Source: Mytilus californianus
Lineage: Eukaryota
DNA: 64,000 nt
Assembly: GCF_021869535.1 (NCBI RefSeq)
Contig: NW_026262679.1
Span: forward strand, 83,328,001-83,392,000
Direction: 5' to 3'
Shown: in pieces, positions 9,069 to 35,009 of the stretch
Numbering within the stretch: the stretch's first letter is position 1
How the letters are laid out: each line of letters begins with the position of its first letter
Made by a program: the position numbers and the translations under genes
Notes under the pieces: generated by a model
The model's input: only the letters and a program-made list of their open reading frames with translations
The model's database searches: none
Told to the model about the DNA's origin: nothing

Positions 9069-9477
9069 TTAAATCATAACTGTAATCAGAACTAAGACAA
9101 CTGACAAAATTGTATATCCTCTGAATCGTACAGCAGAACTGGTATCACAAATTTTGCCAAAGTCACATTGTGCTAGCTCTTTGTAGTAAACCTTCACGTC
9201 AGAATATGAACATACCATTCCACCACAAGCAGGTACATTTACTGGTTCTTCATTTACAAATATTTTAAATGCATGTTTTCCATTTGCTCCACATTTGTAT
9301 AAACTAAATGCAACATTTGCAGAAAACGGAGTTATTTCACTCGTACTGAATTTTCGATTAATATTAGCATCATAACTTGCTGCTGTGAATGGTTCAGAAT
9401 CTTTGAACAATCCAAAAGCAGTGAAGATGGGTAAAATTGTATCTTGATGCCCAAAGAAAATGTCAACTGGTTGGATG
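9069..9477 (-). CDS. MINPP1: MINPP1-A exon 4
   Basis: tttcag|C ATC CAA CCA...; FGHQDTILP, ITPFSANVAFSLYKC; TAA at 9069-9071. Confidence 0.93.
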
Positions 9478-12400
9478 CTGAAATTTAAGGTAACATATCA
9501 TAAATACTATAAAGTAAAACATTGCAAACAAGTTTTAGATTATTTTTTTATAAACAAATCTTTGTTTTTATACGTAAGAATAGACAAACAGTTACTAACA
9601 TTTGTGACAACATTTACTTGTTAACCATAATGCTGTCGTCTATAATGCTAGATTATATTATTACAACTTTCGGAACTTGTACAGTGGAAAAATGAGGCGC
9701 GTAGCAGCAGTGTCATCATTTCCCTAAATCTTCGCGAAAGCCATTTCTGACGTTTTTGGGAAGTTTTAAGAAAAATATCCAAAGTGGTCTTTTCTTTTTT
9801 ATGTATAAAATTTATCTATTTGCCTGCCGATTTAAAAAAAATAACAATTTCTCTAAATATTTAAAATTTTTCCCATAGAAAATATTCAAATGGGTTCACG
9901 ATTTCACGTTAAAATATATACTTCATTTAAAGACTTTCTCACCATGAAAACATAGTGGCCATTTATAAACGACGTTTATATTTTCTCTGTTGATTGTTTC
10001 AAAGTGTGTTGTATGTACTTGCCTGTTTGGTTTTTCAGAGTTCGTGACAGCTTCTTCGAATCGTTCAAAAAGATAAGACGTATAAGGGCAAGTCTGTTTC
10101 CAATTGATGGGGTAGCCATATCCCGTTTTATAGTATTCCTGAAAGATTAAGACACATAAAAGTCCAATTTTATGTGTGAAATATGCTACTAATCTGAAAT
10201 TTACAGGTTTATATTATTATATATCATGTGTGAAATAGCTGACAAATAATTCAGGAGCAAGTCTGATATTAAGGGGTACAATTGGTGCCCATAGGAATAC
10301 CTACATTTTTGTTGATAAACTTTATATTGCCGATAAGTACGTTGATGTTGATGGAGGGGTGAGGGATTTCAAGTAAGTGTATCCATTATATTTACCGTTT
10401 TCGTTACAAAAAAAGGCTTTACACGAGTAACAGCAAATAAATTTGCAATCAGATTTTGATTAGGGTCATTTGATGAATAAGAAAACTTCAGTTTGATAAG
10501 CTTGTGTGAAAGTGTAGTGTAGAAACTCGAAAAGTCAAACTGTCGATCGACTCGAAAAGACCATCAAAAGCACGTAATTTATTTAGAACCTTCTAGGCGT
10601 TTTTTTACACTTAAAGGTAATCAATTCCATCATTTTCATATGCTTTTTTAAACAAAAAATATAATATTTTTTTCATTGTAGTCGGGGAACTAATTAAATG
10701 GACCGAAAGATTAGTTGTAGAACACTTACTAGAAACCGAAATAAAACGAAATATGGCGGTTTTTTGTGAAGTGTAAGTAACCAACACGTAGAAGTCAAAT
10801 GTTCAGACGAGACCTTTGGCTGGGGTGCAGTAATTATATGATTGTCTACTATTTGACTTTCTGTACAGCGCAAGACTTTGTACACTTTATTTTGGGGTGT
10901 TTATCAAATGGTAAATGATTAGGAGTTATATGAACAAAAGAGTAAAGTTAAGTTATAGAAAAAATATTCCTAGTGCAGATTATTAATTGATATTGCTTGA
11001 TATTTGAGCAAGTATACGCAGGTGATGTACGTTTTTTTCTAGGAAATCAATTAGCGTTTTGGGTGGTTTTATTTCTAATAGTGCTAAATCAATATAAGCC
11101 TTCTTTTCGGTTGTTGCTGGATTTACGATTGCACACCTTGTGGATTTAGATTAAGAAATAATACCTCTAAGTCATCCCAATAAGATATTACTCGCAGATC
11201 ATCAATATTAAAAAATTGACACCAATCAGACTGTCCATTCAGACCAAGCTCAAAGGCACATATTTGGTGAATTACAAACACGTCATCTGAAACAATCAAA
11301 ATTGTAGAAGATTCATTATAAAATTTAGTACTTTTTTATAATACAAATATTGATGATAAATGTGATATTGAATTTCTTTTCTTTGCTTAAGTGTCCTTTT
11401 ATTTATATTCTTGAAATTTCAAGGCGGACAGTATTATTATATAGTTATAATTCCCTGGTCGATAGAGACTACTGGTATAAAGAACGTTACAATAGCCTCA
11501 CAGATAGAAATCAATTACATACGAAGACAACCAGACAATTTTAAAGTCCAACTTGAGCATATTTTCAGTCTAGTTAATTACAAGCAGACCATACCAAACA
11601 ACAATATATTTACAGCAATTTGTTGTCTTTTATCTTAAAAGCTGCTAGTCCTGTATATGCATAAAACATTTGCTACTAGAACTTTGACAAAAAGTAACCA
11701 ATAAATTATAAATTTTGTATTCATGCACCATCTTTGATAGCTCAATGATTTAACAAGTCGTTTCAAAATGTAAACGATTATGGATGGACAATACCGTTGC
11801 CCCATCGGTTGATATCATTAGTTTATATTTATGATCTTATTAAAATTTACAACGCTAAATATCGATATGTATAAAAGAAGCTGTTGGGTATACGTCTATG
11901 AGACAGTTACCTTACGACACAAATAACCAAAAAGATATCCAGAGGGAGATCAAAAGTCTTCCACAGTAGACATGTGTCTATACAAGATTTAAGATTGTCC
12001 CAATTCTCTAAAACTTGTATATGAATAAAACAAAGGCTATAAAAATCACCTTTCGATACCAATTCATTAAAATAGAAATTTGCTTTAAAAAAAAACATTA
12101 AAGATATAATAAAGACAATCCCTCTATGCAAATGTCTTTTTTAAATACGCGTTAATTGATTCTTAATACGAAATTTTACAAAAAACATTCACTATTTGCT
12201 GTTAAAAACTGCTTGGTCTTTCATAGAAAGATATAGAACTTAATAATTTTTTGGTTTTATAGATACAATGTATGCAGGAAATTGTTGACGAGTTTTTTAT
12301 GCAGATTGTTTGGACTTTTATATTTTCAAATTCCACTAGGTTTCATTGGCGGTCCGATTTTGACCTTGTTAGTAGAACACACACTTGGGAATGTGATCGT

Positions 12401-13670
12401 TCCTCGTTTTAGTATACTATATACCTGTGTGTGACAAGAATTGACAAGGGTGAATCGGACTGCGAATGTTTATTGAATTCATTATCCGCCGTTCAGACAT
12501 TCCTTGCACCTTACTCTTTCATGGACCTATTCGAAGTCAACCCTCCGTGTGCCGACAAAATTTACAAAACTGATAAACTGCTAAATGTTTTACCGTCCTA
12601 AATTTTATTCAAATATTTGACATTGTACGTAAGAAAACAACTGCTAGTTACTTCTAGCAGTTTTCATGGAGATTGAATTCTGTACTATATATTTGCCAGC
12701 CATCAGCTTGTTATTAGGGCGTCAGTATTTGATTATATGTAATAAAAGAAAATAAATCAATCATGTTTTTCCTCGTGTATAGCATATTATTACAAGTTGT
12801 CCAGTTGTCAAACATTTGCAATATAATGTGTCGTCAATATATATGTACGTTAAACTTACAATGAAACAAGGAAATTGTCAGTATAACATGCTTGTAAATG
12901 GTGTTTACCATATTCGTCCACCTGAGATATCGTTACTTACCAAAATCTATCGATATATTGGAGGTTCCAAGTTTTGTCTGTATTTTCTGGACAATATTAC
13001 TTATCTTCGAACCAGCTTCAAACGAATTAGCTTCTTTTAATATCTCGTCGTTATCATCAACTTCTTCCGTGTATTTTGAACATCTCTCATAAAATCTGGT
13101 TTTCGTATTATCTTCTTTTGCTTCGGGTGTGGTTCCACTGCTTGGAGATGTTTCGTTTAATCCTTCGTAAAAGTATTTAAAACTAGATTTTGTTCGATCT
13201 CTATAAGATGTTGCGAATTTTACTTGTTTGAGTTTTCCGTCTAATAATACTTTAAACCTGGTTCCGTATCGTTTGCCTAATCTCTTCATTTCATCAACTC
13301 CAAGGGAACTTAGAAGCCCCTCTTGGCTCTCCAGAAATGGATTGGTCCACTTATTCATAAACGGGTACTTAGAGAGAATAGCTGCATTAGCTTTAAGCTT
13401 AGAATGCAAAGCTGTTATTCGTTTGATCCATTTCAAGGTAGGAAATCGAGAACCGTGCCTAAGTAATATATTCAGGCCTTCCAGTTGACAATTTTCCCCG
13501 TTAAGAATTGTTGTACTGAATTCATTTTCTTGAATAACGTCTGATATATTCCTAACCCAAAAATAAGGAGTTTTCGTATTGAACAATGGTTTCTTAAACA
13601 GATTATCACTATACACAAAAACAAAGCAGAAAATGAATTTTAAAATAACAATTTGCAACAAACACGCCAT
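9069..13670 (-). CDS. MINPP1: MINPP1 paralog A, complete, 458 aa: join(13670-12941, 11286-11165, 10138-10023, 9477-9069)
   Basis: Signal-peptide-like N-terminus, RHGSRFP active-site motif, CAFEL..WC..F (exon 2), YYKTGYGYPINW..C (exon 3), FGHQDT (exon 4). The exons sum to 1377 nt = 459 codons with an open frame. Hydrophobic C-terminal tail. Confidence 0.93.
10023..10138 (-). CDS. MINPP1: MINPP1-A exon 3 (116 nt; GC donor)
   Basis: ctttcag|GAA TAC TAT...AAC AG|gcaagt; encodes EYYKTGYGYPINWKQTCPYTSYLFERFEEAVTNSEKPN. Confidence 0.88.
11165..11286 (-). CDS. MINPP1: MINPP1-A exon 2 (122 nt; not in the ORF track)
   Basis: tttcag|AT GAC GTG...TTA GAG|gtatta; encodes DDVFVIHQICAFELGLNGQSDWCQFFNIDDLRVISYWDDLE. 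Confidence 0.93.
12941..13670 (-). CDS. MINPP1: MINPP1-A exon 1
   Basis: ATG at 13670; RHGSRFP; ends TTT G|GTAAGT (phase 1). Confidence 0.95.
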
Positions 13671-14214
13671 CCTTCAGTAAATAAAAGCACTTCACTGACG
13701 CACAATATAATTATTTAACATTTGACATGTCTCAATTTAATTTTCTTTGCCGTATGTTATTGAGACTTTGCAATGTAATGCGTCACCACACATCTTGCCT
13801 CGAGCATCGTACAAGAAGTTGTAAAAATTACCTTGACCCTAATATATTATTTTGACATGAAGGTGGTTAGGCTACCTATGGTTTTTAATGCATCCTTCTT
13901 TTTTGTGACATCAGTGTATGCCTGTTGTAATAGAAATTTTCTGTTACGTACATCTGGGTTGATGTCGTTACAGATTATCAATTTACATCCGAAGATATCA
14001 TCCGAAAATTAGCATATGCATGCATACAATTGATTAACCTTATTTTAATCATGATCATTTATTCCTTTGGAATTGCCTCCTGCTAGTCATTCAAAAACAC
14101 AAAAAAATGAATTATTAACATAAAATTTATCAGCAACCTAACTCGGGTTTCAAAGTCATTGTGAAACTACCTATTCAAAAGGTGGCGTGAATTAGATATG
14201 GATACTAAAAAATT

Positions 14215-14850
14215 CCAAAAATCTTTCATCTTGGAATAGTATTAAAACACTTTTCTACACTTTACACAAGTATTCCCCATTCCAAACTGAAAGACAAATT
14301 GAAAGAGTTGGTCCCGCTTTGTTTCGTAAAAATGAATGGCCAACGTGGATACAAGTATCTTGTCGTAGGGAGGGATAAATCGTACTGTGTAAAAAATCAC
14401 TCTGATTCAAGAAAAAATATTCTCTGAAACTGACATTATCAAGATGTTTGACTTTTTGATTGACAGCAATTACATTTGGAGGACATGTTTTTAAACAAAC
14501 AATCGGCATTCCCATGGGAACCAACTCGTGTCGACTTGTTCCTTTATTCATATGATTCTGACTTCATACTGGAAGAAAGAAAAGAAGTTTGCAGTATCCT
14601 TTAACTTCACTTTCCGCTATATAGATGATGCTCTCTCACTATATGATTCAAAATTTGGTTTGAACGCATCTATCCAATCGAACTTGAGATAAAAGATACA
14701 ACAAATACAGTTAAGTATGCCTCGTATCTTAAGGTACATCTAGAAATTGACAATGAGGGTCGGTTGGAAACAAAACTTTACGACAAAAGAGATGATATCA
14801 GCTTCCCAAATTGGCAATTGTGAACTTTCCATTTCTATGTACTAACATTC
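14215..14850 (+). mobile_element. Degenerate Penelope-like RT fragment
   Basis: FSTLYTSIPHSKLK from 14251, QTIGIPMGTN, FRYIDDALSL and KLYDKRDD, with frameshifts. Followed by a ggagcaggatctgcttaccct-family tail to about 15170. Confidence 0.8.
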
Positions 14851-15242
14851 GATCGTAACTACATCCCGTCCCCTTTTCCCCGAATGTGACCTACCTAATT
14901 AGACTTATCATCGGGTTTGTACTTACACGAGCAACACGACGGTGCCACATGTGGAGCAGGATCTGCTTACCCTTCTGGAACACCTGAGATCACCCTCAGT
15001 TTTTTGTGGGGTTCGTGTTGCTCAGTCTTTACTTTTCTATGTTGTTTTTATGTACTGTTGTTTGTTGGTTTGTCTTTTTCTTTTTTAAGCCATTGCGTTG
15101 TCAGTTTATTTTCGACTTATGAGTTTGAATGTCCGTTTGGTGTCTTTCCCATCTCTTTTATCATAGAATTCTGAAATATAAATCAAGTTTATTTAATCGT
15201 AAAAATTGATCATTTATTTAGTTGGTCTATCGAGCTCGATTA

Positions 15243-15632
15243 AATGTAAAACAGTTGAACCTGGTCTTATCTTACGGAGCCTATGATTACCCCTACTATA
15301 TATGTCAAACCGTTAAAACTGGACCCATCCTACTGAGCTTAAGTAGCCCTACTCTACGTGTCAAACAGTTCTAATATTACTTAGTCATGATAGTAGCCCT
15401 ACTTTATGTGTCGAACAGTTAAAACTGGTACAATATTACTGAGCCTAAGTGCCCCTACTCTATTTGTCAAACAGTTAAAATTTAGTACAATCTTACTGAG
15501 TCTAAGTAGTTTTACTCTATATGTCAAACAGTTAGACCTGGTCCAATCTTACTGAACCATATTAGTCCCATTCTATATGTCTAAAAGTTAAAACTGGTTT
15601 AATCTTACTGAGCCATAGTAGCCCTACTCTGT
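15243..15632. repeat. Diverged minisatellite, unit about 56 bp, about 7 copies
   Basis: Recurring gtcaaacagttaaaactggtacaatcttactgagcctaagtagccctactctatat. Confidence 0.85.
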
Positions 15633-16436
15633 ATTAACCTCCCTTTTCTTCTTTAAACTTTATTCACATTGTGAGTATATAATGTAGAAAAAAGCACATG
15701 GTGATAATGCCCAACAAAAGAATTGTAAACCGATGCCATTAATGATATGGAATTTCTTTTCATAAAATATATATAACGCCAAATTCTAACTTCAAACCAA
15801 CAAGAAATTTTTATATAAAGCAAAAACTCTTCGTTGTCTTTTTACAAACGCACGTGTACCTACATGAATGATATGTTCGAGTAATTTTTGCTAAGCAATT
15901 ATACTTGTACATGTATATCAAAAAATATATTACCGTTTGTGTCTTCGACCTGACTTCAACGTTCCATGCGAAATATATATAGTCCAGAGGGCTAAAATGA
16001 TTTTTATTTATAAAAAAAAAATCTCAAGACCAAAATTGATTGATAGTAGCTATTAAATGTTCAAACCGTAGTAATATTTTTCTCGTAAGGCTTTTTAATC
16101 AGCCAAAGAACTAATATTTGTTCCAAAAAAAAGTCAATATGTTTATGTATTTTTTTCTAATATAGCGGTATGATGATATTAAGAATTACCTTTTAAGCAA
16201 ATTCCTAAATTTGTATGCAAAAAAACCCGAAAGAACTCATTTTATCTAATGGAAATGTCGAAATAGTGTTCATGTACAACCCCATTAAAAGGCCTCTGAC
16301 AGATTTTTATTGCGTAAAATCATTGTTATCGATAGTCATTGACAAATACGATATATGTTATTGTTCGGTAAAATAAACAACTACTTGATACGCATATCTA
16401 AGCTGTTATGAATTTCATCCTATGCTATTTACTTTC

Positions 16437-16800
16437 CTATCCAAACGCTGGTTTGTGTGGATCATTTTGACATATTTGGTCAAAATTACAGTCTACCAGT
16501 TTACTGTAGTATTTCTTAAAATCACTGTATCCACACATTGTCTTCCCACAAGCCGGTATAATTACTGGATCTTCGTTGACAAACATTTGAATCACGTGAT
16601 CACTGTTTCCGTCACATTTGTACAAAGCGACTGCTAAATTTGCCGAAAACGGTCCAATAACAGCACCGTGAAATGTTCGGTTTTTATTAGCATCAAAGTT
16701 ATTTGCCATCAGTGGATCAGCATCGTGAAATAGACCAAATGCTGTATAAACTGGAACTATTGTCTCGCTATGGCCAAATGAGATATCCAACTGTGGAATT
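16437..16800 (-). CDS. MINPP1: MINPP1-B exon 4
   Basis: ttccag|A ATT CCA CAG TTG GAT...; FGHSETIVP, IGPFSANLAVALYKC. Confidence 0.93.
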
Positions 16801-19800
16801 CTGGAATTAGCAGTATAAAGTCATACTAACAAAGTTGCATGTAAATAAAAAAAGAGGCTTCCAGGAGCCTGTATCGCTCATCAGGCATTTTTTGCCAAAA
16901 TAAAAAATCGATGTAATGCAACAAAATTATTTGGTGAAAATTTTAGGAAGGTAGATCATGACATTCTGAGCATTTTTGTCCCTGTCAGATTTTCTCTTGT
17001 TATTATTGTTTAAAGATAAATGACAATTAATGCATTTTACCATTATGCTTCATTGCCAACATGGCGGCCAAGTTTGATGACTGAACAAAAATAATTTATA
17101 CTACATACCCTCATGCACTCTAACTTTTGATGAAAATTGTTCAGTAGTTTCAGAGGGGAAGATCTTTGAAAAAGACTACGATGGACACGAAAATTAGTAA
17201 AAACCGTTATTCTAAGGACAATAACTCCTTACTGAGTCATCCGATGGTTTCGGGTCAATTGACATTTTTGGAGATCTTGTATTGCCGGCCATTCTGCTTT
17301 AACTGTATCTCCCTATTTAATATAATTTTTGAGATAAAGGCAAAAACATGAAAATTTGCCCAAAATCGTCATTTAAGGGCAATAACTCCTTGAGGAGTCA
17401 TATAAAAATTTGGTAAAATGAGAAGTAAGTAGAACCTGACCTTGTGAGCATGTTTGACCCCACAGGTTTTCTCTTTCTAGTATGGTTTACAAGATGCAAG
17501 ACAAGTAATGCATTTAACCCCTATGTTCTATTATTAGCGATGGCTGCCATTTTTTTTGACCGACGGGGGAAATCACAAACTTTATACTAGATACCATAAA
17601 CATGAAATCCCCAAAGTTTGGTTGAAATTGTTTCACAAGTTTCAGAGGATAGGATATTCGAAAAAGTTTACGACGACGACGGACCCCAAGTGATGAAAAT
17701 AGCTCACGTAGCCAAGTCACGAATCAGATGAGCTAAAAAGAAACAACTTGACAAAAATCTTAAACACCGACCTGTTTTACAAGTACAAAACATAAATGCT
17801 TTTTTTTTAAACGGCCATTTTACTTTACAAATATGTGTGGTCTATATAAATTTATGATATATTTATTGTAAATCCTGCATCGTTTTTGTGAACGATAGTA
17901 TTACAATTATTGTGCACCCAACAGATCATTTTAATGTCCTCTAATTCGCGGTCCACTGTCTTGTTATTTCCAAATAATGAATTCCAATATCTATTATCCT
18001 GTTGTCAAGGTATAAGTTGTGCAATATGTTCATTTTTTGTCCGCATAATACAATGAAATGCACTTGGCTTTCAAATATTTGGAAACATACTTGGCTTTCA
18101 GCATTCATGATGAAGATAAATACAAAAAAGTGCCTCGAACGCATACAATTTATCGAGTGTTATTCTGAATTTTTTAATGACTACTACCGGAAGTCCAGTA
18201 AAGAACTTCTGCTATAAAATTGTCAATTTCAAATAGAACCATAGACAAATGTCTTTTATAAAAGACTTCCTTAAAATATCTTTATCTGTAGAAAAAAATA
18301 AAACCCTATATAATAATTTCTTTTTCTCTATTTCTTTTCTTGTAGGAATCGCGTGTTCCTCCAATACTACTTAAATAGACAGCTAAATTTTCACGTATAA
18401 GCTCGATTCACATAAAATTCAAAAGATATATTATAATATCTAACGTGGACATAAATTTTGAAACATTTATGCTATAGACTCTTTATTTCTTACTTATTAT
18501 GCTGCAGACTGGCAGTTGAGACGGTATGGTCGAACGTTTTAAACATGTACGAAGTAAATGGACAACTTTGTTTCCAGTTGATAGGGTAAGCGTATCCTTG
18601 TTCATAATAATCCTACAATAAACAACATATAATTGCTTAAAATCATATATTTTCGCGAAATAAATGGTATTTCAAAACAGAAGTATTTATTGATTAAGTC
18701 ATTTTATATTGTAATACTGCTTGATTTATTGATTGATGGTCGATTGATGGACGCTTTTCGTCACAAAATTACAGAAATATTCTGACCGAGAACAAAAACA
18801 ACAATAAATATTTGGAGTGCTTTGTTATACGTATAACGGCTGAGTTGGTTTCGTAATTTTAAGTGATTGTGACTGTAGCATGAAAGTAACTGGAATAAAA
18901 AATTGATATTTATGAGTAAATTTAGGTTTCTGTAACTGCGAGTGTTAATACGATCCGAACTCTATGTCTTATTTCGTTTATTTGTTTTGTGCTTAGTATC
19001 GACCTGTTGAGCCAAGCTCTTTCCAACTGTTTTTTGTATTTTTTTTCACAAGTCAGAGTGTTGTTAAACAACTGTTCCAGGTTAGGTGAAGGGTTGAACA
19101 CTCTGTAACAAACATATTTAACAAAACATCTTTATGTTCGTCCATAGCCAGGATCTTGTATTCCATTAGTTTCCGTCTTTCTGACCGTGACACGTGTATA
19201 TTTCGTTTATTGTTGTATAAGTCAGGCCGTTGACTTTTTTTTAATGTTTTCTCATTTTGTCATTCTAGGAATTCAAAACTTACTATACTGCATGGGTACT
19301 GCTCATTGTTGAGGGGTACGGTGGTCTGTAATTGTTCACATCTTTGTCTTTATGGGCATTTATATTCTTGAATGTAAAACTATAATCAAAAATACTTACA
19401 TACCCATCGATCGCTAAACTATACAAAACATAAAAGAAGAATGTGTCTGAGGACACGAATGCCCCCGCTCAAGCTTCCTTTTCAAACGAAAACGGAAAAG
19501 ACGGAAAGACGGAAAGACGGAAGGACGGAAAGACGGACGGTCAAGTGCAACACTTAATGCCCCTTCGCCTTTCGGCGGGGGCATAAAAAGAGTATTCAAA
19601 TTTCCGACTCACAAAAGATAGAAAAGTACTTACCTCTATATTTTGCAGGTAGTCAATGACAAGAAGGTCATCTACGTCAAAGAGTTTACACCAATCAGAT
19701 TTGTTGAAAAACCCCAACTCTAACGCACAAATTTGGTTAACAACAACCACTTCAACTAAAAATATAGGAATGGCAAAATGTATAACTTTCACTATTTCTT

Positions 19801-21310
19801 ATAACATTATCTACAGAAACACACAATACAATGACAAAGGGATGCATACGGTATAGATATATATATGTTGTCCGTCCGCCTGTAAATATCTACAGTCAAT
19901 ATCTTCTCACAATTTAAATGGGCTCAGTCTGACTTGTATCTCTTTTTTGTGTAGTATTTGTGTGTATCGTGTATTTGGTTTCTGAATTTATTCAGGAACT
20001 AACTTACTCAAACATCCTTGTTGGCTTTCAACTTTTCGAGTTTGGGCGTTTCTGCTGAAGGTTTACACCACAACAAAGTGTTACATTTTATTTTCATCAT
20101 GGTTTCACGGATTGGATTAGGCAACATTAGAAGACGATTCCGCCATGAGATATACAATCGAATCAATCGAAGGGGACATTTTGTTTGTTATACATATTAG
20201 TAAGATCCATAACAGAAAAGTAGCATTGTTTAATCTGTCTGCATCTAAAAATTATTTGAGGAAAATGTATTTTGTTTTATTATAAGAGTGCTGAAATATT
20301 TCTCTAAAATTACATCCCCGCACACACACACACTCGCAATCTCATTAAAGAAACACACGAACATACCTCATTGTAGTTAAAAAGGTTCACCACTAACAGT
20401 TACTGCCGAAAAATATAACTATTTTTTTATTTCCCTTTTATTTCCATTTTATTTTAGTTAAGGAATTCGACTTGAAATGTCTGTACCTTTCAGAAATATA
20501 ATTGTAAGCCGTTTAAGAGTATCTTCTCACATCCTTCTACTGAAGAAAGCATTGCATACTCAAACCTAATGACTAAATTAGCAATATTATACCTGCAGAC
20601 AAGTTGTAAAATCCTAGCTTAGTCTCAACTTTTCTGATCACGTTTGTCATCTCCTTGCCACGAAGAAAGGCTTCGTACTCAGTGGTAGTGTTATCATTGT
20701 CTTCCACTTCTACACTGTATTTGTGACAGTTATCGTAGAATCGAAGTTTTTCGTCGTCCACTTTAGGCTCTGGTTCCTTTGTATTAGTTTGAAAAGTTTT
20801 GTTAAGTCCTTCATAGAAAAATTTGTAACTGTTCTGAGTTCGGTTTTTGTGAGTAAATGAAAAGTTGATATGATTCAAGTTTCCCTGTAAGGAAGATTTA
20901 AATCTTTTTGCAAATCTATCAGCGAGTCTTAACATTTCGTATTCTCCGACAAGACTTAGGGTCCCCTCTTTAGCTTCCGGGAACGGATTGGACCATAGCT
21001 TAATAAATGGATACCGGGAAATCACATTCGAGTCGCCTCCTAATTTGATTTGCAAAGCTGTCATCCACTTAATCCACTTTATAGTGGGAAATCTGGCTCC
21101 GTGTCTAAATAAAACATTGAGTCCTTCTAGTTGACATGTCTGGCCGTTATGGTTTACCGTATTATATTGATTTTCTGGTATACTTTCAGTTGGATCCTTC
21201 ACCCAGAAATAAAGCGTTTTTGTATTGAACAACGGCTTCATGAATGATTCATTTCCTAGCACAGTTGTACAAAATAAAAACATATAAGCAAAATTAGTAC
21301 ACGGCTTCAT
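16437..21310 (-). CDS. MINPP1: MINPP1 paralog B, complete, 440 aa: join(21310-20593, 19755-19634, 18612-18494, 16800-16437)
   Basis: First in-frame ATG at 21310 (MKPCTNFAYMFLFCTTVLG, signal-like), RHGARFP, FGHSET. All introns GT-AG. The exons sum to 1323 nt = 441 codons. Ends QNDPHKPAFG with no hydrophobic tail. Confidence 0.93.
16848..17739 (-). mobile_element. HINE-like element (tttagctcacct family) in MINPP1-B intron 3
   Basis: On the minus strand it starts tttttagctcatctg and ends gatgagcgatacaggctcctggaagcctcttttt (subTIR plus aggct/agcct stem-loop). Same termini as 57746-59429. Confidence 0.65.
18494..18612 (-). CDS. MINPP1: MINPP1-B exon 3 (119 nt)
   Basis: ttgtag|GAT TAT TAT...AAT AA|gtaaga; encodes DYYEQGYAYPINWKQSCPFTSYMFKTFDHTVSTASLQHN. 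Confidence 0.93.
19432..19589 (-). mobile_element. Short pearl/HINE-like element with an ACGG-type microsatellite
   Basis: atgcccc/ggggcat subTIRs, a gacggaaa repeat run and a terminal gtgtc...gacac hairpin. Same termini as 37274-37836. Confidence 0.65.
19634..19755 (-). CDS. MINPP1: MINPP1-B exon 2 (122 nt)
   Basis: ttttag|TT GAA GTG...ATA GAG|gtaagt; encodes VEVVVVNQICALELGFFNKSDWCKLFDVDDLLVIDYLQNIE. Confidence 0.93.
20593..21310 (-). CDS. MINPP1: MINPP1-B exon 1
   Basis: RHGARFP; ends GCA G|gtataa (phase 1). The ORF-track start at 21346 is TTG. Confidence 0.93.
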
Positions 21311-22139
21311 ACTGAAGGCAGAGCGATGTAACAATATAAATGGCAACGTCTGTGTAAAATGGGTTAAATTCTATCTTCACTATAGTTTTAACTTTATTTT
21401 AGGATAATAAGGAATATGGGTTCACTTTTGATACTATCAATATACTAGTATCTATGCAGTATATCTCTAATCAAACATACTTTAGTCATCTTGATTGTTT
21501 CAAGGACAACAGCGAGTTATATTCATCACGTCTATCAATTTAGCCACATTCTAAAACGTGTTTCTTTTAAAAATTATTCCTCGAAAACCTAAAAATATTC
21601 AAATGTATGATGGAGTTTTTACAAATCGTGGCTATTTATAATAACAGAATAGTATGAGTGTTCAGACAGTGCCAGTTCAAAAGTCTTCCTAACACCTTTG
21701 AATTGTTTCTGCATGATATAACATCTTTTGCATCATAAGTTTTTATATACCCTTACAAGTTTTAGTGCTTATTTCATTAGACCATATGAAAAAGTATGTT
21801 GTTTGCCTTCACTTTCGTTTCACTTTTCCAAAGACTTCACAAATCTTCAATGTACTATGTGTTTCGTCAATGTTTTTTACTCAACGCATACAGTTTCCTT
21901 ATTATTGCTTAAAAAAGATGACATTTTATTTTTCTTTAAATGAAACTATCTAATTTGTCTCGGAGAGAAAAGATGAACAACTAATAAACTGAGGAAAGCA
22001 GCAGTAAAGAAGCATCTACTGTTACGCAAGCTTTACGCCCAGAAGTTATTGAACCAATGGTTCCAAGTTGTAAATTTGAAGTCATCCTTTGAAATTTTTA
22101 GGGACGCCATCACTAGTTGGTTGACTGTTATATAATATC

Positions 22140-24510: not shown

Positions 24511-25459
24511 CTTCTGCTTTTCTTTTAGTATCGTCTGCCCCTTTTTAGATAGAAGGGAACTAAATAAGCTTATGAATGAGCTATCTGTTGTTTTTCATCT
24601 TTTTGTCTTTCTTTTGTTATCAACCCCCGGGTTGTTCGTGGGGTTGATTTTTCGTCTTTTTATTTCCCTTTTCTCCAAGAATAATCATATTTTGTGCTTT
24701 TGCCAATGAAACACTGTCCGTCAAACTGACAAATAATGGCATAAGTTAGAATAAATTCAGGTGCAAGGATGAATTTAATTATTTTATTTTATATTTATAA
24801 CAGTAAGGAACAAATAAGCGAAAAGAGGGGCACAATTAGTTTCCGTTGGAATACCAATCACTTTTTCGGTACACTCTATCTCCAAAACGAACATGATTCT
24901 TACTGTATCAAGCATGAACAATAACTTCAATCATTTCTGTTTTGTAAGAGTGCATTAATTAATGTCAGTATTTTATTTAATTGGAAAATCAATGTGTGTT
25001 GGCGTTCAAATGCGTCTATTAATCTTGAATCGTATAAATGTGTAATTATTTCTTACAGAAAACCTGAAATTCCAAAACTAATTTTCTTGAGAAAGTCATC
25101 AAAATGCAAACAAAGCAAAATAACACCAAAGCATACATTGTTGAAGGCCGTTAGGTGAACTATAATTGCTTATATCCACTTCAGTTGAACTCTGGTGAAT
25201 AGTTGTCTCATTGGCAACAATGCCACATCTCTTTACTTTTATATAGTTGTCTCATTAGCAATCAGACAACATCTCCTTATATTTATATACCGTAGATGTC
25301 TTATTTGCAAATATACAACATCTCCTATTTTTTTTTATACTATTACAATTGAAAAATTCAACAAACTGTCCATATAGAATAAATAAATATTGAACAAACA
25401 AGTTTATTCCACTGTTTAAATATATTGATAGTTTAATCAATATTTGATTGGTTGAGACT

Positions 25460-25965
25460 ATCCCACGTGTCATTGAACAAATCTTCATATTCCATTCTGA
25501 GGATCATATTCCCCTCTGAAATGTCGGGATTACTTCGTGCGCACGACGTTACGCGCGGTTAATGTACATAACGTTTTGAACTTCTTATTCTTCTTAAAAT
25601 AGCGATAGCAAAAATCATTATCATGTTCAAATTTATTTCAGACGATAAAACAAAAAGACTTCTAATTAAATTTTGATCCTTACTGTTTATCAATGGGTAT
25701 GCAAAAACAAGCGGATAAGAAAAAAAAATGTATGCAAAATAATATTTAATGTATTGATAGTAAACAAAGCATAGGCAGTGGAATAAAACATTCATTTCCC
25801 TTTGCCTCGGGAGATATGAAGATTTGCTCACCCTCGAAAAATCATAATTCCCTCGGGCAGAGCCCTCGTGAAATATGAATATTCTTGGGTGAACAAATCT
25901 TCATATCTCCCTCCGACACGGGAAATAAATGTATATAGTACTGAATTCATTATGACACATGTCAA
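25460..25965. mobile_element. Foldback/palindromic non-autonomous element
   Basis: Inverted arms gggagatatgaagatttgctcaccc (25809-25833) and gggtgaacaaatcttcatatctccc (25887-25911), plus outer gtgtcat/atgacac inverted ends. Confidence 0.55.
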
Positions 25966-26066
25966 GGTTGTATGTCTGGGACCGTATGTTAGAGGTCGTC
26001 TTTTAATTAGAAATATTAATCATTACTTGAATTTTTTTTGTGTGAAATAAATGATAACCAGAAATA

Positions 26067-26511
26067 TCATTTTAACAGTATCCTTATGCAAGACAGGTAA
26101 GTCAATAGCAATACCAGCATATAGTCTGAACTCAAAATGAAACTGTTACTGGACATGCTGGTATTAATTTTACATATCTGCTCAACATCGCAGTTCGCAA
26201 GATCCTTGTAATATGTTTCAAATTCTGAAAACAGACAACTTCTTTGTCCACATGCCGGAATAACTACTGGTTCCTCGTTTACAAATAATCTAATAAGGTA
26301 GTCCATGGATGTGTCACATTTGTATAATCCAAACCCAAGATTGGCTGAAAATGGACCAATCAAACTTGTTCTAAATGTTCTGTTCTTGTTCATTTGGTAA
26401 TTGTCAGCTAAAAATTTCTGTGAGTCGTTGAACAACCCAAAAGCCGTATACAGTGGAATAATAGTATCAGTATGTCCAAACTGTATTACAAAAGGTTCTG
26501 GGTATGTCTCA
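26067..26511 (-). CDS. MINPP1: MINPP1-C exon 4
   Basis: tttcag|T GAG ACA TAC...; FGHTDTIIP, IGPFSANLGFGLYKC. The first 57 codons of the tracked ORF are intron. Confidence 0.93.
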
Positions 26512-29500
26512 CTGAAATGTATCAAATACAAGTAAAGTAGATTTAATTTTATTTGGCAGCAGTGTTTGACGCAGATAGACAAAAAAATACTAGATTTAGG
26601 AAATAACAAGATTTCTGTAATAACGGGGTAGAAATAATCGATTTCAAATGTCAATTTTAAAGTCATACAGATAACCGTCAAAAGGTGATATAACCAAACT
26701 TACAACATAAATATTTTGCGATATCTTGGACATATATAATAACTTTCAAATTTTCGTTCATAAAATCAAAACTTCGCAGAACGAGTTTGGGAACAAACAT
26801 ATTATCGGACAACAAGGTCCAACAAACATTTCGGTCTACATTCTCGGGAGCAAACATTTATTCTTATGCAATGAATTTTGTTTTCTGTGAAATATTTTTC
26901 AAATGTTATATTTCTGCAATATTATAACAGAAGTATATTTATAAGTTACGGAAGATTAGTTAACTGACGAATATTGAAAAATTATGTTTTGAAACTCATT
27001 GTAAAAAGTTATTGGAACGAAGGGAACTAATTTTAAGTCGATAGACTTACTCTGTCAAAAAATAATTTATGACAAAACATGTTTATCTTGAACAAATACC
27101 AGGTTTAGTAGAAAGTAAACATAACCATAATACAAGGCAAAGGCAAAATGTTTAGAAACTACTATACGGTATGGGTTTTTCTCATTGTTGAAGGCCGTAC
27201 GGTTGCCTTTAATTGCTTACATCCACTTCATTTGTATACTTTGGTGGATAGTTGTCTTATTGGTAATCATACCACATCTCCTTATTTTTATATAGTATAA
27301 AAATTCGCTCATGTTTAGAATTTTCTTTCCTGCAACATTGAAATTATGGGATATTTTAAAAGATACCTGTAAATTTAGACAATGCGAAATCAGGAGGAGT
27401 TTCCCACATATTACTATTTTGGAAATTGCATTGTACAATCTCTCCATGCACGCCTATATACGAGTGAACTCGTGCGCTTTACACTCCCATTTATTTTTAA
27501 GTTATATAGTAGGTTGTGGCCTCCTAGTAATCGATGTGGTGCTATAGAAACAAACTTTAATTATTGTTAACGTTCTCCATTTATGTTAACTTACTTCAAA
27601 TGCTATTGAACTACCTTGCTCATTTTATACAGCGTATTGATGCCTATAGTTTACTTCTTTTAACTGATGATGAAAACAGTACTCTTTCTGTTAACTTCTC
27701 TGTCGCTGGCAATACAATTTTCTTATCAATTGAGGTTCAGAATTATATTTTGAAAAGTAAAAGGTTTATTTCATTTTCCTTATGAAAGCTTTAATTAAAT
27801 GTTTTCCTTGCATTTCGATTATTTTATTCCATTTACTTTTGCCGGCTTTTTTAAAACATCTAATAAATGTTTAAAAAGTTGATATTCGTACAGACAATTG
27901 CACATATAAAATCGTCAAATAATTATAAAGAAGTCTGTAAACTGATGAAACTAAGATCTTTCACTCTGATCAGTTGGATTTGTTTCAATAAGTCTGACGG
28001 AGCTGAGTGAAAGATCTGATTTTGATTAGATTGAATATGTTGGGCTATCAATTTTGAAAGTTACTAACTAAAGATAATCGCTTTATTTTTCTATCGACGC
28101 CAAATGCCTATTTCAGTGCATTCTGATATATGACAGACTATAGGAACACCGACGAGCAATGTATGATAATAGTAATATGCAACGGCCGATTACGCCGATT
28201 GTTCATGTGCAAATTACTTGATGGATGGATTGGTAAACGTCCAGTTACAAACATTACATGCATATCAGAACGATAACCTGTAAATATGATATGAATATGA
28301 ACTCTGCTTTGTACTAGACAGACATGCTGAACTGGATTTTGACGTGCTACAATATACCAGTTCTCAAGAAGACTGTTACCCTTACCGGATAAATTATTCT
28401 GACTTAGAGCCGACGAGTATTTGGTCTTTTTCCTGATGCTGCGGGAAGCAACAAACGCCAAGTGTCAAGTCTTAATATCAACCCGGCCTTGGATCGAACC
28501 CCAGTACTCCCAGTGGCCACACTCGAGGCGATGTGCAATGAGGTGCAATTTACTTGACAAAAGCGTTTAATATTGTTACAAAGTGAAGAAATGTACAATT
28601 TTACGATCGTGGGGTTTTAGACAAACTTAAAGACCAAAAACAATATTGTACTTTTTACTTAGATAGCACTTTAAAATTTAAATACAAGGCACTGGACGGT
28701 ATAATACATCGACCGTGGCAAAATAACGCCTACATAAGTATAAATGGAAAAGGAAATGTCAGATAAATAAAAACCGATTGGCAATTTTTTCCGCTTTGGG
28801 CACTATTATAACAGGTACCATTAGTCATGCTTACTTTTAAGATTAATGTGTTTAGCGATAAAACCGTTTGTTTAAAATACGGTTGCTTGGGGTAGACAAA
28901 TTAAATTGTTTTCTGGATGCTGTTCCGGCGAGATCAACTGATATATTAGACTATTTATCTCGTACAAACATTTATTATAAAGATGTGATATATTGTAAGA
29001 GTTTCATTTCCTTAACATCGACCAATGGTATATTTTTACACAAAAAGGGGGATGTTAATACAATACGGATATGTCTAAGCTAACAACATAAGGAAATTCC
29101 TTAAGAATAGAATTTAGAAATGGTATAAAAAATACACTTTTTCTAATTCATTTTTGATAGTACTATAAAAGAGAAAAAAATAAAAAATCATATATCAGAG
29201 TAAGTATGATTTTCAAAACAACAAAAGATAAGAAAATAACAAATTATGTACAAAACGTAACGGTTAAATGATGACCGAAGACAAGATCTTCAGGTGTGTT
29301 TTGTATGTCTCTTGTGACTGTACTCCTAAAACTAAAGAAAATGTGTGGTAAAGGTTTCATAGTGATATCACTCCTAAAACTAATCAATACACGCAGTATA
29401 CCGATTTGACAGAAAATCATAAATATGTTAAAAACAGCAAAGGAAATAGTGGGTGAGGACCGATTTTATAATGCCATGTAGGTATTTACGACCGCTTCTG

Positions 29501-32500
29501 ATGACCACTACATATCCATATAATGAACACATAACGTCGTTACTAATATCATATACTCACTTATGTCGTTTTCCATCCACAACATTTCTGAACATTTTAA
29601 ACAGCCGTGAAGTATATGGACAAGATGTCTGCCAATTAATTGTGAAGCCGTATCCCATCTCCCAGTAGTTCTAAAGAAGAAATTAGTTTCCATATAAAAT
29701 TAGATACCAGGCGCGGATCCAGTCATTTTGAAAATGGGGGTTCCAACCCCCAGAACAACTAGAAACGTTTAAATGAAAATAAATTTAAAAAAACTATTGA
29801 ATGGTGACTTGGGAATAGAAATAGGGTCACCATTGGTCTTCCTCCGACCGGCAGTTAAACCCTCGCCAAAATGGGGCGTCCGTTTGGCTGCGAGGGGTGT
29901 ACTGTACAAGTTCGCAGCCACGTCCGGTCAGAATGGGTACGTTAAATCCGATGCATCGTGTAACGAGAGTGCCACGCTCTGGGCACGTTAAGAATCCTTG
30001 CAACAACTCTTTGAAGTGTCCGTAGGTCGCATGTTGCAAGGCTAAATTTCTGTCCCTATCTAAAATACACCCATTTTCCCGACCTTCATCCCGGACGGCC
30101 TCTATTACAGGTCCTACCTATCGTATGTATTGTTAATTTGTTCTCGTCCTGAACATGCATGAAATATTTGCCACTGGACGTTAAGCAACCAACAATAAAT
30201 CAATGAACTAATAAAGATAAGACGCAAAAAAAACAGGGATAAACACTGGCACACACAAAAATGCATATGCCTCGGCATTACGAACTACCCTACACTCCAA
30301 TAATGATGTTAGCTATATACCCTGGAATATCTTACTTTCGTGTCTTACTGTCATACTGTTTTACTTATCTCAGAAAATTTTTATAACACTTCGTGATACA
30401 TGAAAGATTAGCTAACATTGACTTCCAGATCTATATATGAGTTTGACCAATATAAAAATAGGAAGATGTAGTATAATTGTCAAGAGACAATTCTCCATCA
30501 GACCAAATGCTGTAAAAGTTAGCAACTATAGGTTAACGTACGGCCTTCAACAATGAACAAAACCCATACCGCATAGCAAGCTATAAAAGATCCGGAAATG
30601 ACAAATGTAAAACAATTCAAACTAAAAATCGTCTCTTTTTTCGTAATTTTATTTTCAACAATGAACAAAACCCATACCGCATGGCAAGCTATAAAAGATC
30701 CGGAAATGACAAATGTAAAACAATTCAAACGAAAAATCGTCTCTTTTTTCGTAATTTTTTTTATGTAGAGATTCCCGTGTTCTTGGTTATTTAACGAAAA
30801 AATATTATCAAGACAAAGGTAAGTGTTGTTTAATTTATCAATTAAATGGAATGCAGACGGGTCTTTACTGAGTTTGGCCATAAACAGTGATTCATAACAA
30901 TACAGTAACAGGTGTGCTCTGAAAGGGGTACTATTGGTGTTCATGTGAATACCCACAACCTGTCAATAAACTTTACTGAAACTACAAAAATTTTGTCAAA
31001 GAGAAAATTTACAGCTTTAATCATCTCATCACACGTTTAATTATATAAAAATAAGGATATGTGGTATTTACTATATAAAAATAAGGAGATGTGGTATGAT
31101 TGCCAATGAAACCACTATCCACCAAAGTTCAAATGAAGTTTATGTAGTTATCATAGGCAACTGTACGGCCTTCAACAATGAAAAAAGTAAGTATATTTAC
31201 CATATTTACCTTAAACTCATGCTTTATATGAGTTGCAGCAGATACATTTTCAATCAGGTTTTTTAAACGGCCATCTAATTAAAGTGTTGTTTGATAAGAT
31301 TCTGTGAAAGTGTAGTGTAAAGAGTTGGAAAGTCATAATTTTGAATCGAATTAAAAGGACGCAATTTATCTGAAACATCCAAAGAATGTTTACACTTCAA
31401 AAATAGTTAATTCCACTATTTTCATAGGATTTGTTCAAAAAGTTAATGATAAGTTCTTTGATAATAGTTTACATGGCTACTATAATTCACATGATTGTAC
31501 TTACACGAATATCAATTAGATAGTCAATGATCAGCAGATCTTCCATGTCAAAGAATTGGCACCAATTTGATTTGTTTAACATACCAAGTTCAAACGCACA
31601 TATTTGTTGTATGGTAACAACATCCACTAGAAAATAAGACACATTAGATTAAAATAGTTCTTAAGTGTGGTAATAGATTACTCTCAGTCGTGTCAAAAGA
31701 ACACATTGCGTGTAATCAAAGTTCAGTGTTAAAAGGCATTACTGCGTGTGATATTAACGACTGGTGAAGAGCAGCAATTCTGTTCTGTATTCTGTTTCTT
31801 TGCTTTTGATTTTATAAGTACGTACATGAAGGAATTTTGTGTCATTATTTAACTTGACTTTTCTTTCGCAGGGTAACTGTTTTGTTCAGTTTGCAAAACA
31901 CAAGTTATGTTTCATTTCAAATTGGTATATTAAGTTTGGATAAATAAAAAAAATTCTGAAGACATAGAGTAAAGGGAAAAACGAAAAACCGATAGAACAT
32001 GCTATCAGATTTCCTTTCAATGTGTATTCATCATGCTGGTGAATGTGTGTTCTCGTGTACATGTGATACAGTACTTTTTGTCCGAAATTTTACCTTTTTG
32101 TTTGATTTCTATTTTGTTCGATAATGTTGCTTAATGTCCGATAAATATCTGTTTCTAAAAGCCCCAGTTATATAGACGTTACGACCGCGATACGACATCT
32201 CTATGACCGCAAAAATTTACGATCACAATGATCTCTACTACGTCTCCACTTCATTTGGTTTGAAGAAAATAGTACATTTTAAAACACACCATGGTATAAA
32301 TAATACTTAACCTATGGTCAGCTGGAAAAAATATCTGTCGTGGTTAAAAACAATAACAATATTTGAAAGTGAGACTGCGAAACATCTATATATAGTTAAA
32401 CCCATCTTATTTCAAAATCGTTGACGGTCGAGAGCAACAGTGACCTAATTCTTTGGCCTTTTGACTCCGAAATCAATATGCTTCTTTCCCTTCCATATAT

Positions 32501-35009
32501 ATTCGTAAAGCAAAATATTACAATGATCACTTCAACTTCAAGGTAATTTTTTGTATAATACGGAAGAACAAAGTCACTTGCAAAAACTGGAAAACACTTA
32601 TATCATATTAGCTGAACCAACAAACGGATACTGACTCGTTCCTTGACATTTTTAAGACGCAGAAGAAGGAAAAATAAATTCAATTAACAGGAAAGTTTAA
32701 AGTACATATATGAAACAATTTCCGGGATATAATTTGAAGTCATTTCTACATTTCTTGTATAGAAATGGACCACGGCAAACAGCTGTGACCGATAATAAGT
32801 TAACAGTTTTGTCAAGAATTGATCCGAAATTTCTGTTTAAACAGATCGGAGTATTTGAGCTTCTGTGAAAGCATAGAGACATGGTAATCTGCTCGTGCGC
32901 TGGAAAGAGTTGATGTTTCCCAAATTTCACGAATTAATGCATATTTCTTTCTTAAAAATGTTCACGTAATTTCTTGTTTTCGCTTTATTTTTTGTACTCC
33001 TAAAGCTTGTCTGTATTCCAACTTTCAATTTATTGCAATGGCAATGTCCAAAATAGTAGTATGGGTTGTTAAAGAGTTATTTTCACACGACGTGTTTGCT
33101 TTTGCTGCTCAATCAATATAAATTAGCGATTTTCTATGTAAAACCGGAAGAACAGATCACCTATTACTTAATTATGATTTTAAAGGGGCAACAAATTTAA
33201 TAACACGAATGACAATCACAATGTATTGTACAGTAAAAAAAGGGTTTGAAATTTTATTAATATGCATATTAACAACGTAACTATATAAAAATAAGGACAT
33301 GTGGTATGATTGCCGATGAGACAACCATCCGACACAAGTTCAAAAGAAGTGATATGCTGCAAAACTATAGTAAGGACACTTCTTCGAATTCTTGTTAATG
33401 TAGTACTTTTATCCAACCGACCATACTTGTATTCGTAAACCAAAATATTACAATATTCTCAATTTCCTCATAGGGACAGGGTCATGATATTTCTGAGATA
33501 CCAGATGGGCGGTATATATCGATTGCTTTAATATACTCGAAATAATGATAGATTGATATAAACTTGCTTGCTTTGAGTCCAGTGGCAAATTATCAAGCGT
33601 ATTTTGAGACCAGAACAATTTAATAATTCATATATATGTAGGTCTGCTAAGTAGGCCAACTGGAGTGAAGGGCCGATAAGTTGGACTGCCACTGGAAAAT
33701 GAAGGCAAGTTAGTTATATATAGGAGCAGAACTTTTGTCTTGCAGCCGGGCACCCAAAAAGGATCCCTCAGAAGGATGTTGCAAAGGTTCTTTAATGTGC
33801 AGTGAGTACGGAACTCGCCTTTATAAACGAGGAATCAGATTTAACGTTCTCGTTCTGACAGGACGTGGCTGCGAATTTATACATCCCGGACAGCCAAACG
33901 GATGTCGCATTTTAACGAAGAGTTTTACTGTCGGACGCGAGAAGTCCAGGGAAGACTTTGTTTCTATACCAAAGAAAACCCTTGGGGGACAAAATACAGC
34001 TACCGCATTAACACCGATTCTATGAAAAAAAATTGATTAAGCAATGTCGGACTAATGGGGTGTCGGATAAATGGGGATGTCGGACTTATTAGGCGTTGGA
34101 TGTTGTGCGAAATATCGGGCGACCCCCAAAAAGTAAAGTTTCGGACAAAAAGCTAAATTTTCGGACATCATGAAAGCAAATCGGACAATAAGCGACTGTG
34201 CCGAACAAAAAGCAAAAGTTGCCGCCAAAAGCAAATTTATTCAGACAAAAAGCAACGTAGGACAAAAAGCACTGTACATATCATAAACATGTTTTACCTG
34301 GTTCAATGTCAGAAGCTCCAATTTTCTGTCTCACTTTATTGACAACAGATGTCATTTCATTTCCATTTAAGAATTTGTAAAATTCAGTTAAAGTTTCTTT
34401 GTTTTGGTCAACATCTCTTATGTATTTACCACAATAGTCGTAATACCTCAGTAATCTATCGTCAGTAGATGTTGTTATTGAATTTTTACCGATTACATTC
34501 TCCAAACCCAGACAAAACTTGCTTTTGCTTTGCTTTGTCCTAGCTTTCGACGTCGTTTCAAACATAAACTTCCCAGCATTTTTACGTACATTGTTTCTAA
34601 ATCGTTTGCCGAATCTCTCCCCGAGTTGAAGCATTTCTTCATCTCCAACGGCAGACTGTTGATACTGTTTGCTTTTTGGAAATGGGGTTCTCCAGTTCCC
34701 TATAAAGGGATTTTGTTTAACAACTAATGTATCCTCTCTTAGAACTGTGGAGATGTTATCCATTTTCTGTATCCATAGTAGAGATGGATATCTGGCACCG
34801 TGTCTGAATAAGTAGTGGAAATTTCTAATATGACACGAATGTCCTCCATACATAAATGATCCATCTCTATTCTCCAGTATAGTTTCATTAATATGTTTTA
34901 CCCAAAAATGCGGAGTCATAGCATTAAAGATTGGTTTCTTCAAATTGTCTTGAGGAATCACTTTGGTAATTGAAAATAACATAACTGTCAATAAAATGAC
35001 ACATTCCAT
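26067..35009 (-). CDS. MINPP1: MINPP1 paralog C, complete, 462 aa: join(35009-34298, 31626-31505, 29670-29561, 26511-26067)
   Basis: MECVILLTVMLFSITKVIP (signal-like), RHGARYP, FGHTDT. All introns GT-AG. The exons sum to 1389 nt = 463 codons. Hydrophobic C-terminal tail. An alternative in-frame ATG lies at 35069. Confidence 0.92.
28220..28545 (-). mobile_element. Degenerate tRNA-derived SINE in MINPP1-C intron 3
   Basis: tRNA-like B-box on the minus strand (reverse complement of ggatcgaacc near 28490). Its 3' tail matches the tail of the SINE at 29835-30204. Confidence 0.5.
29561..29670 (-). CDS. MINPP1: MINPP1-C exon 3 (110 nt)
   Basis: ctttag|AAC TAC TGG...CAT AA|gtgagt; encodes NYWEMGYGFTINWQTSCPYTSRLFKMFRNVVDGKRH. 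Confidence 0.93.
29835..30204 (+). mobile_element. SINE-like dispersed repeat in MINPP1-C intron 2
   Basis: GC-richer body gttcgcagccacgtccggtcagaatggg..., tail tgaaatatttgccactggacgttaagcaaccaacaat. An inverted copy lies at 33551-33957. Confidence 0.6.
30770..30960 (-). mobile_element. Penelope-like RT fragment
   Basis: GIHMNTNSTPFRAHLLLYCYESLFMAKL...LDNIFSLNN, a decayed GIPMG...LYCYES...YLDDI..LNN. Adjacent to a 108-bp direct duplication at about 30551-30760. Confidence 0.65.
31505..31626 (-). CDS. MINPP1: MINPP1-C exon 2 (122 nt)
   Basis: ttctag|TG GAT GTT...ATT CGT|gtaagt; encodes VDVVTIQQICAFELGMLNKSNWCQFFDMEDLLIIDYLIDIR. Confidence 0.93.
33551..33957 (-). mobile_element. SINE-like repeat (inverted relative to 29835-30204) in MINPP1-C intron 1
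   Basis: cagatttaacgttctcgttctgacaggacgtggctgcgaa...cagccaaacgg is the reverse complement of the 29880-29950 core. Confidence 0.6.
34298..35009 (-). CDS. MINPP1: MINPP1-C exon 1
   Basis: RHGARYP; ends CCA G|gtaaaa (phase 1). Confidence 0.92.

Follow-up and report, generated by a model that had tools for sequence, protein, structure and literature searches.

MINPP1 has mostly been studied as an endoplasmic reticulum (ER) enzyme controlling intracellular inositol hexakisphosphate (InsP6). In humans, pontocerebellar hypoplasia results when the enzyme is lost. How frequent extracellular forms of this enzyme are among animals has, to our knowledge, been poorly charted. Here we consider three MINPP1-like genes, called A, B and C, which lie in tandem between positions 9069 and 35009 of a 64,000-nucleotide stretch of the genome of the mussel Mytilus californianus (the whole stretch is called the window in what follows), and we compare them with the described members of the family. 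Cheng and Andrew are said to have reported, in 2015, a glycosylphosphatidylinositol (GPI) anchor on the Drosophila enzyme Mipp1. Human MINPP1 is an enzyme of the ER lumen that acts on, and limits, the intracellular pool of InsP6 (PMC7705663), and Drosophila Mipp1, according to the part of that article which cites Cheng and Andrew 2015, is found at the plasma membrane, faces outwards and is not retained in the ER; the fly protein also serves as a membrane marker in embryos (PMC9237840). In a rumen fluke, MINPP genes have expanded to six copies (PMC11727788). Concerning bivalves, a search of the literature for MINPP1 together with Mytilus or bivalve returned no relevant study, and the bivalve and shark proteins with hydrophobic tails discussed below were not found described there.

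The gene models of A, B and C were rebuilt by combining splice sites, open frames and the similarity between the paralogs. The resulting features, with the two C-terminal tails that bear on the destination of the proteins, are the following:

9069..13670, minus strand: gene A, MINPP1-like, 458 amino acids; exons 13670-12941, 11286-11165, 10138-10023 and 9477-9069.
16437..21310, minus strand: gene B, MINPP1-like, 440 amino acids; exons 21310-20593, 19755-19634, 18612-18494 and 16800-16437.
26067..35009, minus strand: gene C, MINPP1-like, 462 amino acids; exons 35009-34298, 31626-31505, 29670-29561 and 26511-26067.
9072..9146, minus strand: tail of gene A, 25 residues past the last conserved cysteine, a candidate GPI-attachment signal.
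26070..26171, minus strand: tail of gene C, 34 residues past the last conserved cysteine, a candidate GPI-attachment signal.

The canonical metazoan MINPP1 resembles A, B and C in its branch-2 fold, in the RHGxRxP motif, in the four coding exons with an exon 2 of 122 nucleotides and in the conserved cysteines. It differs from them in its ending, HDEL or KDEL, and in the tripeptide HAE, whereas A, B and C lack any xDEL ending and carry HQD, HSE and HTD, respectively. The best-supported reading of the locus, which we judge probable, though with clear reserve, from the predicted termini of the proteins, is that the three genes would encode an extracellular set, A and C being anchored and B soluble.

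An earlier note on this DNA had described three complete genes with a common exon architecture, and this was confirmed: each gene has four coding exons, an exon 2 of 122 nucleotides, intron phases 1/0/2 and unbroken frames, and the introns are of the GT-AG type, with the exception of intron 3 of A, which is GC-AG with a GCAAGT donor. The window contains about 33% G+C and not a single N. The genes had also been considered old duplicates, in agreement with whole-protein identities of only 49% (A-B), 40% (A-C) and 44% (B-C) and with the 22 identical residues among the 40 that can be aligned between the exons 2 of A and C. No RNA families were found when the region 8000-36000 was scanned with Rfam.

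A dispersed repeat is present in intron 2 of A (10271-10305 and 10387-10655) and in intron 2 of C (31192-31441), the two introns having in common a stretch of 270 nucleotides that is 68% identical and has no match in Rfam. The 35-nucleotide core of the repeat, at 10271-10305, is matched by many reads and contigs, with unrelated flanks, in all four of the RNA runs considered below for gene A.

At the N-terminus, the best 10-residue hydropathy window within the first 35 residues reaches 2.85 in A, 2.0 in B and 3.08 in C; by this rule of thumb all three proteins have a hydrophobic start, as expected from the signal-like N-termini previously attributed to them. At the opposite end the proteins read as they had been quoted, finishing with ITVMI in A, KPAFG in B and RILLK in C, and the absence of an xDEL signal for retention in the ER was verified in each of them.

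The tails of A and C were evaluated with rules of thumb for hydropathy and for the omega site. In A, the triplet SSA stands 22 residues from the end and is followed by a short basic spacer and by a hydrophobic run of 14 to 16 residues that extends to the final residue; in C, the triplet SNS stands 26 residues from the end, followed by a 7-residue spacer, a 13-residue hydrophobic core and then RILLK. In full-length analyses the database proteins P0001 and P0002 took the place of C, and P0019 that of the A/B lineage, other searches being carried out with single exons. The hydrophobic core of C is identical in P0001, and in P0002, the M. edulis orthologue of C, the triplet GNS precedes a fully hydrophobic run of 17 residues reaching the C-terminus. 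Transcripts of related mussels show only I-to-M or V-to-I changes in the tail of A. In an AlphaFold model of P0001 the globular domain stops at the last conserved cysteine (residue 428) and gives way to a low-confidence linker (residues 429-442), which contains the candidate omega site in its part of lowest confidence (residues 436-441); a separate helix, residues 443-461, comes last. The GPI-like character that had been suggested for the tails of A and C therefore agrees with the rule-of-thumb criteria, and the tails are kept in other mussels.

B ends 10 residues past its last cysteine, with neither a hydrophobic tail nor an xDEL signal. Since its N-terminus is signal-like and neither an anchor nor a retention signal follows, secretion would be the default expectation, and the proposal of a soluble B appears sound in this respect.

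The three proteins are MINPP-type branch-2 histidine phosphatases. The Pfam domain His_Phos_2 (gathering cut-off 23.6 bits) is recognized in exon 1 of A, B and C with 61.1, 36.7 and 30.5 bits and in the last exon of B and C with 30.9 and 33.8 bits. The RHGxRxP motif, claimed to be intact, is present in all three, as RHGSRFP in A, RHGARFP in B and RHGARYP in C, and the substrate-binding arginine of the RT..S block is also kept. Concerning the proton-donor tripeptide, for which HAE is the norm among MINPPs, the glutamate is kept in B (HSE) and replaced by aspartate in A (HQD) and C (HTD), H-x-D being frequent among bivalve MINPP paralogs. A, B and C retain the catalytic set, made of the histidine of RHGxRxP, the substrate-binding arginine and a His-x-acid proton donor. 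Ten cysteine columns are invariant over all nine M. californianus copies of the gene found in the genome search reported below, and A, B and C have 3, 8 and 7 N-glycosylation sequons, respectively, both features being consistent with proteins of the secretory pathway.

The fold was evaluated on P0001, which is 91% identical to C. Its AlphaFold model, built from a 46-sequence family alignment, has a mean predicted local distance difference test score (pLDDT) of 93.1 and a predicted template modelling score (pTM) of 0.87, and its best matches in the PDB are Aspergillus phytases (A. niger) and the MINPP of Bacteroides thetaiotaomicron, with a probability of 1.00. Target template modelling scores (TM-scores) are 0.73 to 0.79 among the top matches and 0.66 to 0.79 among the top 30. 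On this model, C has a phytase/MINPP fold. The closest solved folds are those of bacterial MINPPs (Bacteroides thetaiotaomicron, Bifidobacterium longum) and of fungal histidine acid phytases, with TM-scores of 0.55 to 0.79, but the sequence identity with the mussel protein is just 13 to 18%. Bacterial MINPPs and fungal phytases are secreted or cell-surface degraders of phytate; the fungal enzymes use an HD motif, the bacterial ones HAE.

Transcript support, which had been left to be sought, was obtained for A and C, in spliced form and in related mussels. For gene A, four RNA runs were compared with the region 8300-14200, and spliced contigs about 97% identical to the window were found in three of them, belonging to three studies (one of these runs is recorded as RNA-seq of a 'mollusc metagenome'). 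The contigs join 9477 to 10023 (across the GC-AG intron), 10138 to 11165 and 11286 to 12941. One contig of 765 nucleotides extends from exon 2 of A past the stop at 9069 and as far as 8951, with the last exon unspliced; as it is uninterrupted over the stop, the hydrophobic tail of A is retained in the mature mRNA.

For gene C, an intron-less mRNA contig of 1747 nucleotides from a related Mytilus (L027, which encodes P0001) aligns to all four exons in the blocks 35045-34298, 31628-31505, 29670-29556 and 26511-25936, in agreement with the borders of C within a few bases, and the NCBI model for the M. edulis protein P0002 has the same junctions as C. The tail of C is also included in mRNA. We compared the window with L027 and obtained for C a ratio of nonsynonymous to synonymous substitution rates (dN/dS) of 0.25 overall, 0.20 in the mature domain and 0.52 in the 34-codon tail, where the 13-residue core is unchanged. 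C is under purifying selection. The possibility that A and C are pseudogenes was considered and rejected, on the grounds of splicing, transcription and purifying selection.

To place A, B and C among the other copies of the family, the 1.65-Gb assembly of M. californianus was searched with two exons, the first of A and the last of B; C99 denotes the contig of the window, which corresponds to C99:83328001-83392000. Nine MINPP copies were found genome-wide, each containing both query exons and all having the same four-exon layout; an exon 2 of 122 nucleotides is also present in the five copies modelled outside the window. The array was thus not a triplet, as first described, but comprises four tandem genes, the fourth, D, lying to the left of the window. 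The copies outside the window are the following:

C143:64338671-64352279: canonical copy M0 (loci L003, L014, L020 and L021); RT..S arginine kept, HAE, ends in HDEL.
C99:83321439-83325756, same strand as A-C: copy D (locus L019), about 2.2 to 6.6 kb to the left of the window.
C99, 57.71 Mb: copy V1; RHGARMP, arginine kept, HAD, ends in -VG.
C99, 57.63 Mb: copy V2; RHGARMP, arginine kept, HSD, ends in -VG.
C99, 112.83 Mb: copy V3; RHGARMP, arginine kept, HAD, ends in -VG.
C99, 110.28 Mb: copy V4; RHAARFP, arginine kept, RST instead of His-x-Asp, ends in -VG.

M0 and the M. galloprovincialis protein P0006 share 93% identity, and the RHG motif was read, in the latter as a stand-in, as RHGSRSP. 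D is intact, with 427 amino acids, exons of 712, 122, 107 and 343 nucleotides and the ending CRTQ; it has a conserved counterpart in M. coruscus, P0018, and its annotation in M. californianus is XP_052101304.1. Since D has RHVARYP, with RHV in the place of RHG, a valine for the substrate-binding arginine and HSY for HAE, it is probably an inactive copy. Among V1 to V4 (loci L022-L025) the endings QAVG, QIVG, EVVG and PVVG are found, and V4, judging from its altered motifs, looks inactive. D and the orthologues found in M. edulis, M. coruscus and M. galloprovincialis already carried the annotation MINPP1 or MINPP1-like.

An open frame on the plus strand of the window, at 44573-44989 and downstream of the array, codes for a head rich in Ser and Thr and, after it, for the beginning of an intermediate-filament rod (Pfam Filament, E 5e-24); it resembles the first exon of a lamin-like gene.

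The spread of the different endings was evaluated by searching 1.84 billion representative proteins with a profile of the nine exon-1 sequences, which returned 1365 relatives with E up to 0.001. Among the 53 full-length database proteins whose endings were examined, about 16 have an xDEL signal, 19 have a hydrophobic tail and the rest have other endings, including a recurring -VVG or -IVG, similar to the endings of V1 to V4 and found in proteins of Argopecten, Mactra, Pinctada and Sinanodonta. Hydrophobic-tailed MINPPs are present in Pecten maximus, Sinanodonta woodiana, Mercenaria mercenaria, Ruditapes philippinarum, Dreissena polymorpha and Pinctada imbricata, and in sharks minpp1b (Carcharodon, Cetorhinus; P0106, P0178) has a hydrophobic tail in the place of xDEL, so that the division between ER-retained and membrane-tailed MINPPs extends to vertebrates. 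Like A and C, the tailed bivalve proteins and shark minpp1b lack xDEL and have the tail past the last conserved cysteine; most of these homologues have a stretch of small residues before the tail, although no triplet is found in P0059, P0068 and the shark protein P0106.

A maximum-likelihood tree of 34 sequences was used to reconstruct the relationships, with support given as ultrafast bootstrap (UFBoot) and Shimodaira-Hasegawa-like approximate likelihood ratio test (SH-aLRT) values. The HDEL gene of Mytilus and A-D form one clade (100/99), with the HDEL gene of scallop outside it, and this indicates that A-D are in-paralogs of the canonical gene rather than its one-to-one orthologues. Within this clade A-D are grouped together (92/86) as sister to the Mytilus HDEL gene; B joins A and P0019 (100/99) and D joins the orthologues of C (91/81). 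Because the tandem clade is sister to the canonical gene, the tandem array is, according to the tree, a mussel-lineage expansion of the canonical HDEL gene. The -VG copies fall in a separate, bivalve-wide clade, which also contains many hydrophobic-tailed proteins, and most tailed bivalve MINPP1-like proteins belong to a clade other than that of A-D.

From this analysis it is evident that the description of the locus as lineage-specific holds for the tandem clade, but not for the tails and the non-xDEL endings, which are found across bivalves and in sharks. Nor is a cell-surface MINPP peculiar to mussels, an outward-facing MINPP of the plasma membrane being already described in Drosophila in the portion of PMC7705663 that cites Cheng and Andrew 2015. 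Drosophila Mipp1 derives from an independent insect duplication, and it is likened here to the mussel proteins by its description, the anchoring of the latter being predicted from sequence. Since A and C are not sister genes, their tails may have had either of two histories: they were gained twice, or gained once with later losses in B and D. Downstream of the stops of these two genes, a search for what might remain of a hydrophobic tail gave nothing convincing.

Several observations weigh against an extracellular set of phosphatases. A and C have an aspartate where MINPPs have the glutamate proton donor, and with this replacement their phosphatase activity is only putative. An RNA run of M. 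californianus itself, of which 6% of the reads were sampled, gave no reads on the exons of A, whose expression would therefore be low or absent in that sample, and for B neither a transcript nor a close orthologue was found, the word search giving only relatives 49 to 51% identical. Charged residues come after the hydrophobic core in C (RILLK), P0001 (EILLK) and P0019, the homologue resembling A (RNYLD), and such endings would also fit a short transmembrane anchor. Finally, the localisation of A, B and C and their GPI attachment are read from sequence signals, a circumstance that leaves some room for the intracellular placement considered below.

The charged endings lead to the alternative that survives best, according to which A and C would be type I single-pass membrane proteins, with the hydrophobic segment kept as a transmembrane anchor and the enzyme facing the lumen or the outside. 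Besides RILLK and EILLK, and RNYLD after a 13-residue core in P0019, it can claim the AlphaFold model of P0001, where the tail of C appears as a 19-residue helix. However, the uncharged cores are merely 13 to 16 residues long, which is short for a helix spanning a membrane; that of A runs to the final residue without a cytosolic flank, the M. edulis orthologue of C ends in 17 hydrophobic residues, and the small-residue triplets are found at the expected distance, within a disordered linker. We consider a transmembrane anchor unlikely, although it is the strongest of the competing explanations.

Less likely still, in our opinion, is that A, B and C are intracellular proteins, residing in the ER, the Golgi or the lysosome by means other than xDEL, and that they are extra canonical-like copies devoted to intracellular inositol phosphates. 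In favour of this view, the canonical MINPP1 resides in the ER and works on intracellular InsP6 (PMC7705663). Against it, the genome retains a canonical HDEL copy elsewhere, none of the four tandem copies has kept HDEL, and the non-xDEL endings are conserved between species. We regard it as very improbable that at least one of A, B and C, most likely B, is silent or decaying despite its intact look, as could be supposed from the missing transcript and close orthologue of B and from the lack of reads on A in the single own-species RNA run sampled, given that frames, splice sites and catalytic motifs are all intact despite 40 to 49% divergence, that spliced transcripts of A and C exist in related mussels and that C has a dN/dS of 0.25.

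Returning to the reading of A, B and C as an extracellular set, the following course of events can be proposed. The canonical, ER-resident HDEL MINPP1, which is found on another chromosome, would have been duplicated within the mussel lineage and so have given rise to the tandem genes. An N-terminal signal peptide would take the products of A, B and C into the secretory pathway, and with the loss of HDEL they would not be retrieved to the ER. A and C, having a GPI-type C-terminal signal, would most likely be held by a lipid anchor on the outside of the plasma membrane, in the manner of Drosophila Mipp1, while B would most likely be exported as a soluble enzyme. Once outside the cell, the three proteins would strip phosphates from InsP6 and from other higher inositol phosphates. 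The localisation, GPI attachment, substrate and physiological role assigned here to A, B and C are what we infer from the data presented above.

It is possible to extend this proposal to an extracellular phytase toolkit derived from the ER MINPP1, made of two surface forms, the soluble B and the catalytically dead D, in which the GPI signals of A and C may have separate origins, since these genes are not sisters. Such a toolkit might harvest phosphate from the phytate of filtered plankton and detritus or, alternatively, clear InsP6, which strongly inhibits the growth of crystals, from the sites of shell deposition. In this complete form the scenario is distinctly doubtful, and we would place it below both a transmembrane anchor and an intracellular location in likelihood; the roles in phytate digestion or in biomineralisation are speculation.

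Neither a new kind of enzyme nor a new mechanism emerges from the analysis, as surface MINPP is known from flies and tails are common in bivalves. What the locus offers is a natural targeting series within one genome, which includes copies retained in the ER, copies probably anchored by GPI, and others that are probably secreted or probably inactive. Because this variety of C-terminal endings is repeated across bivalves as well as in a shark, the MINPP family may be a convenient test system for the hydrolysis of extracellular inositol phosphates in animals.

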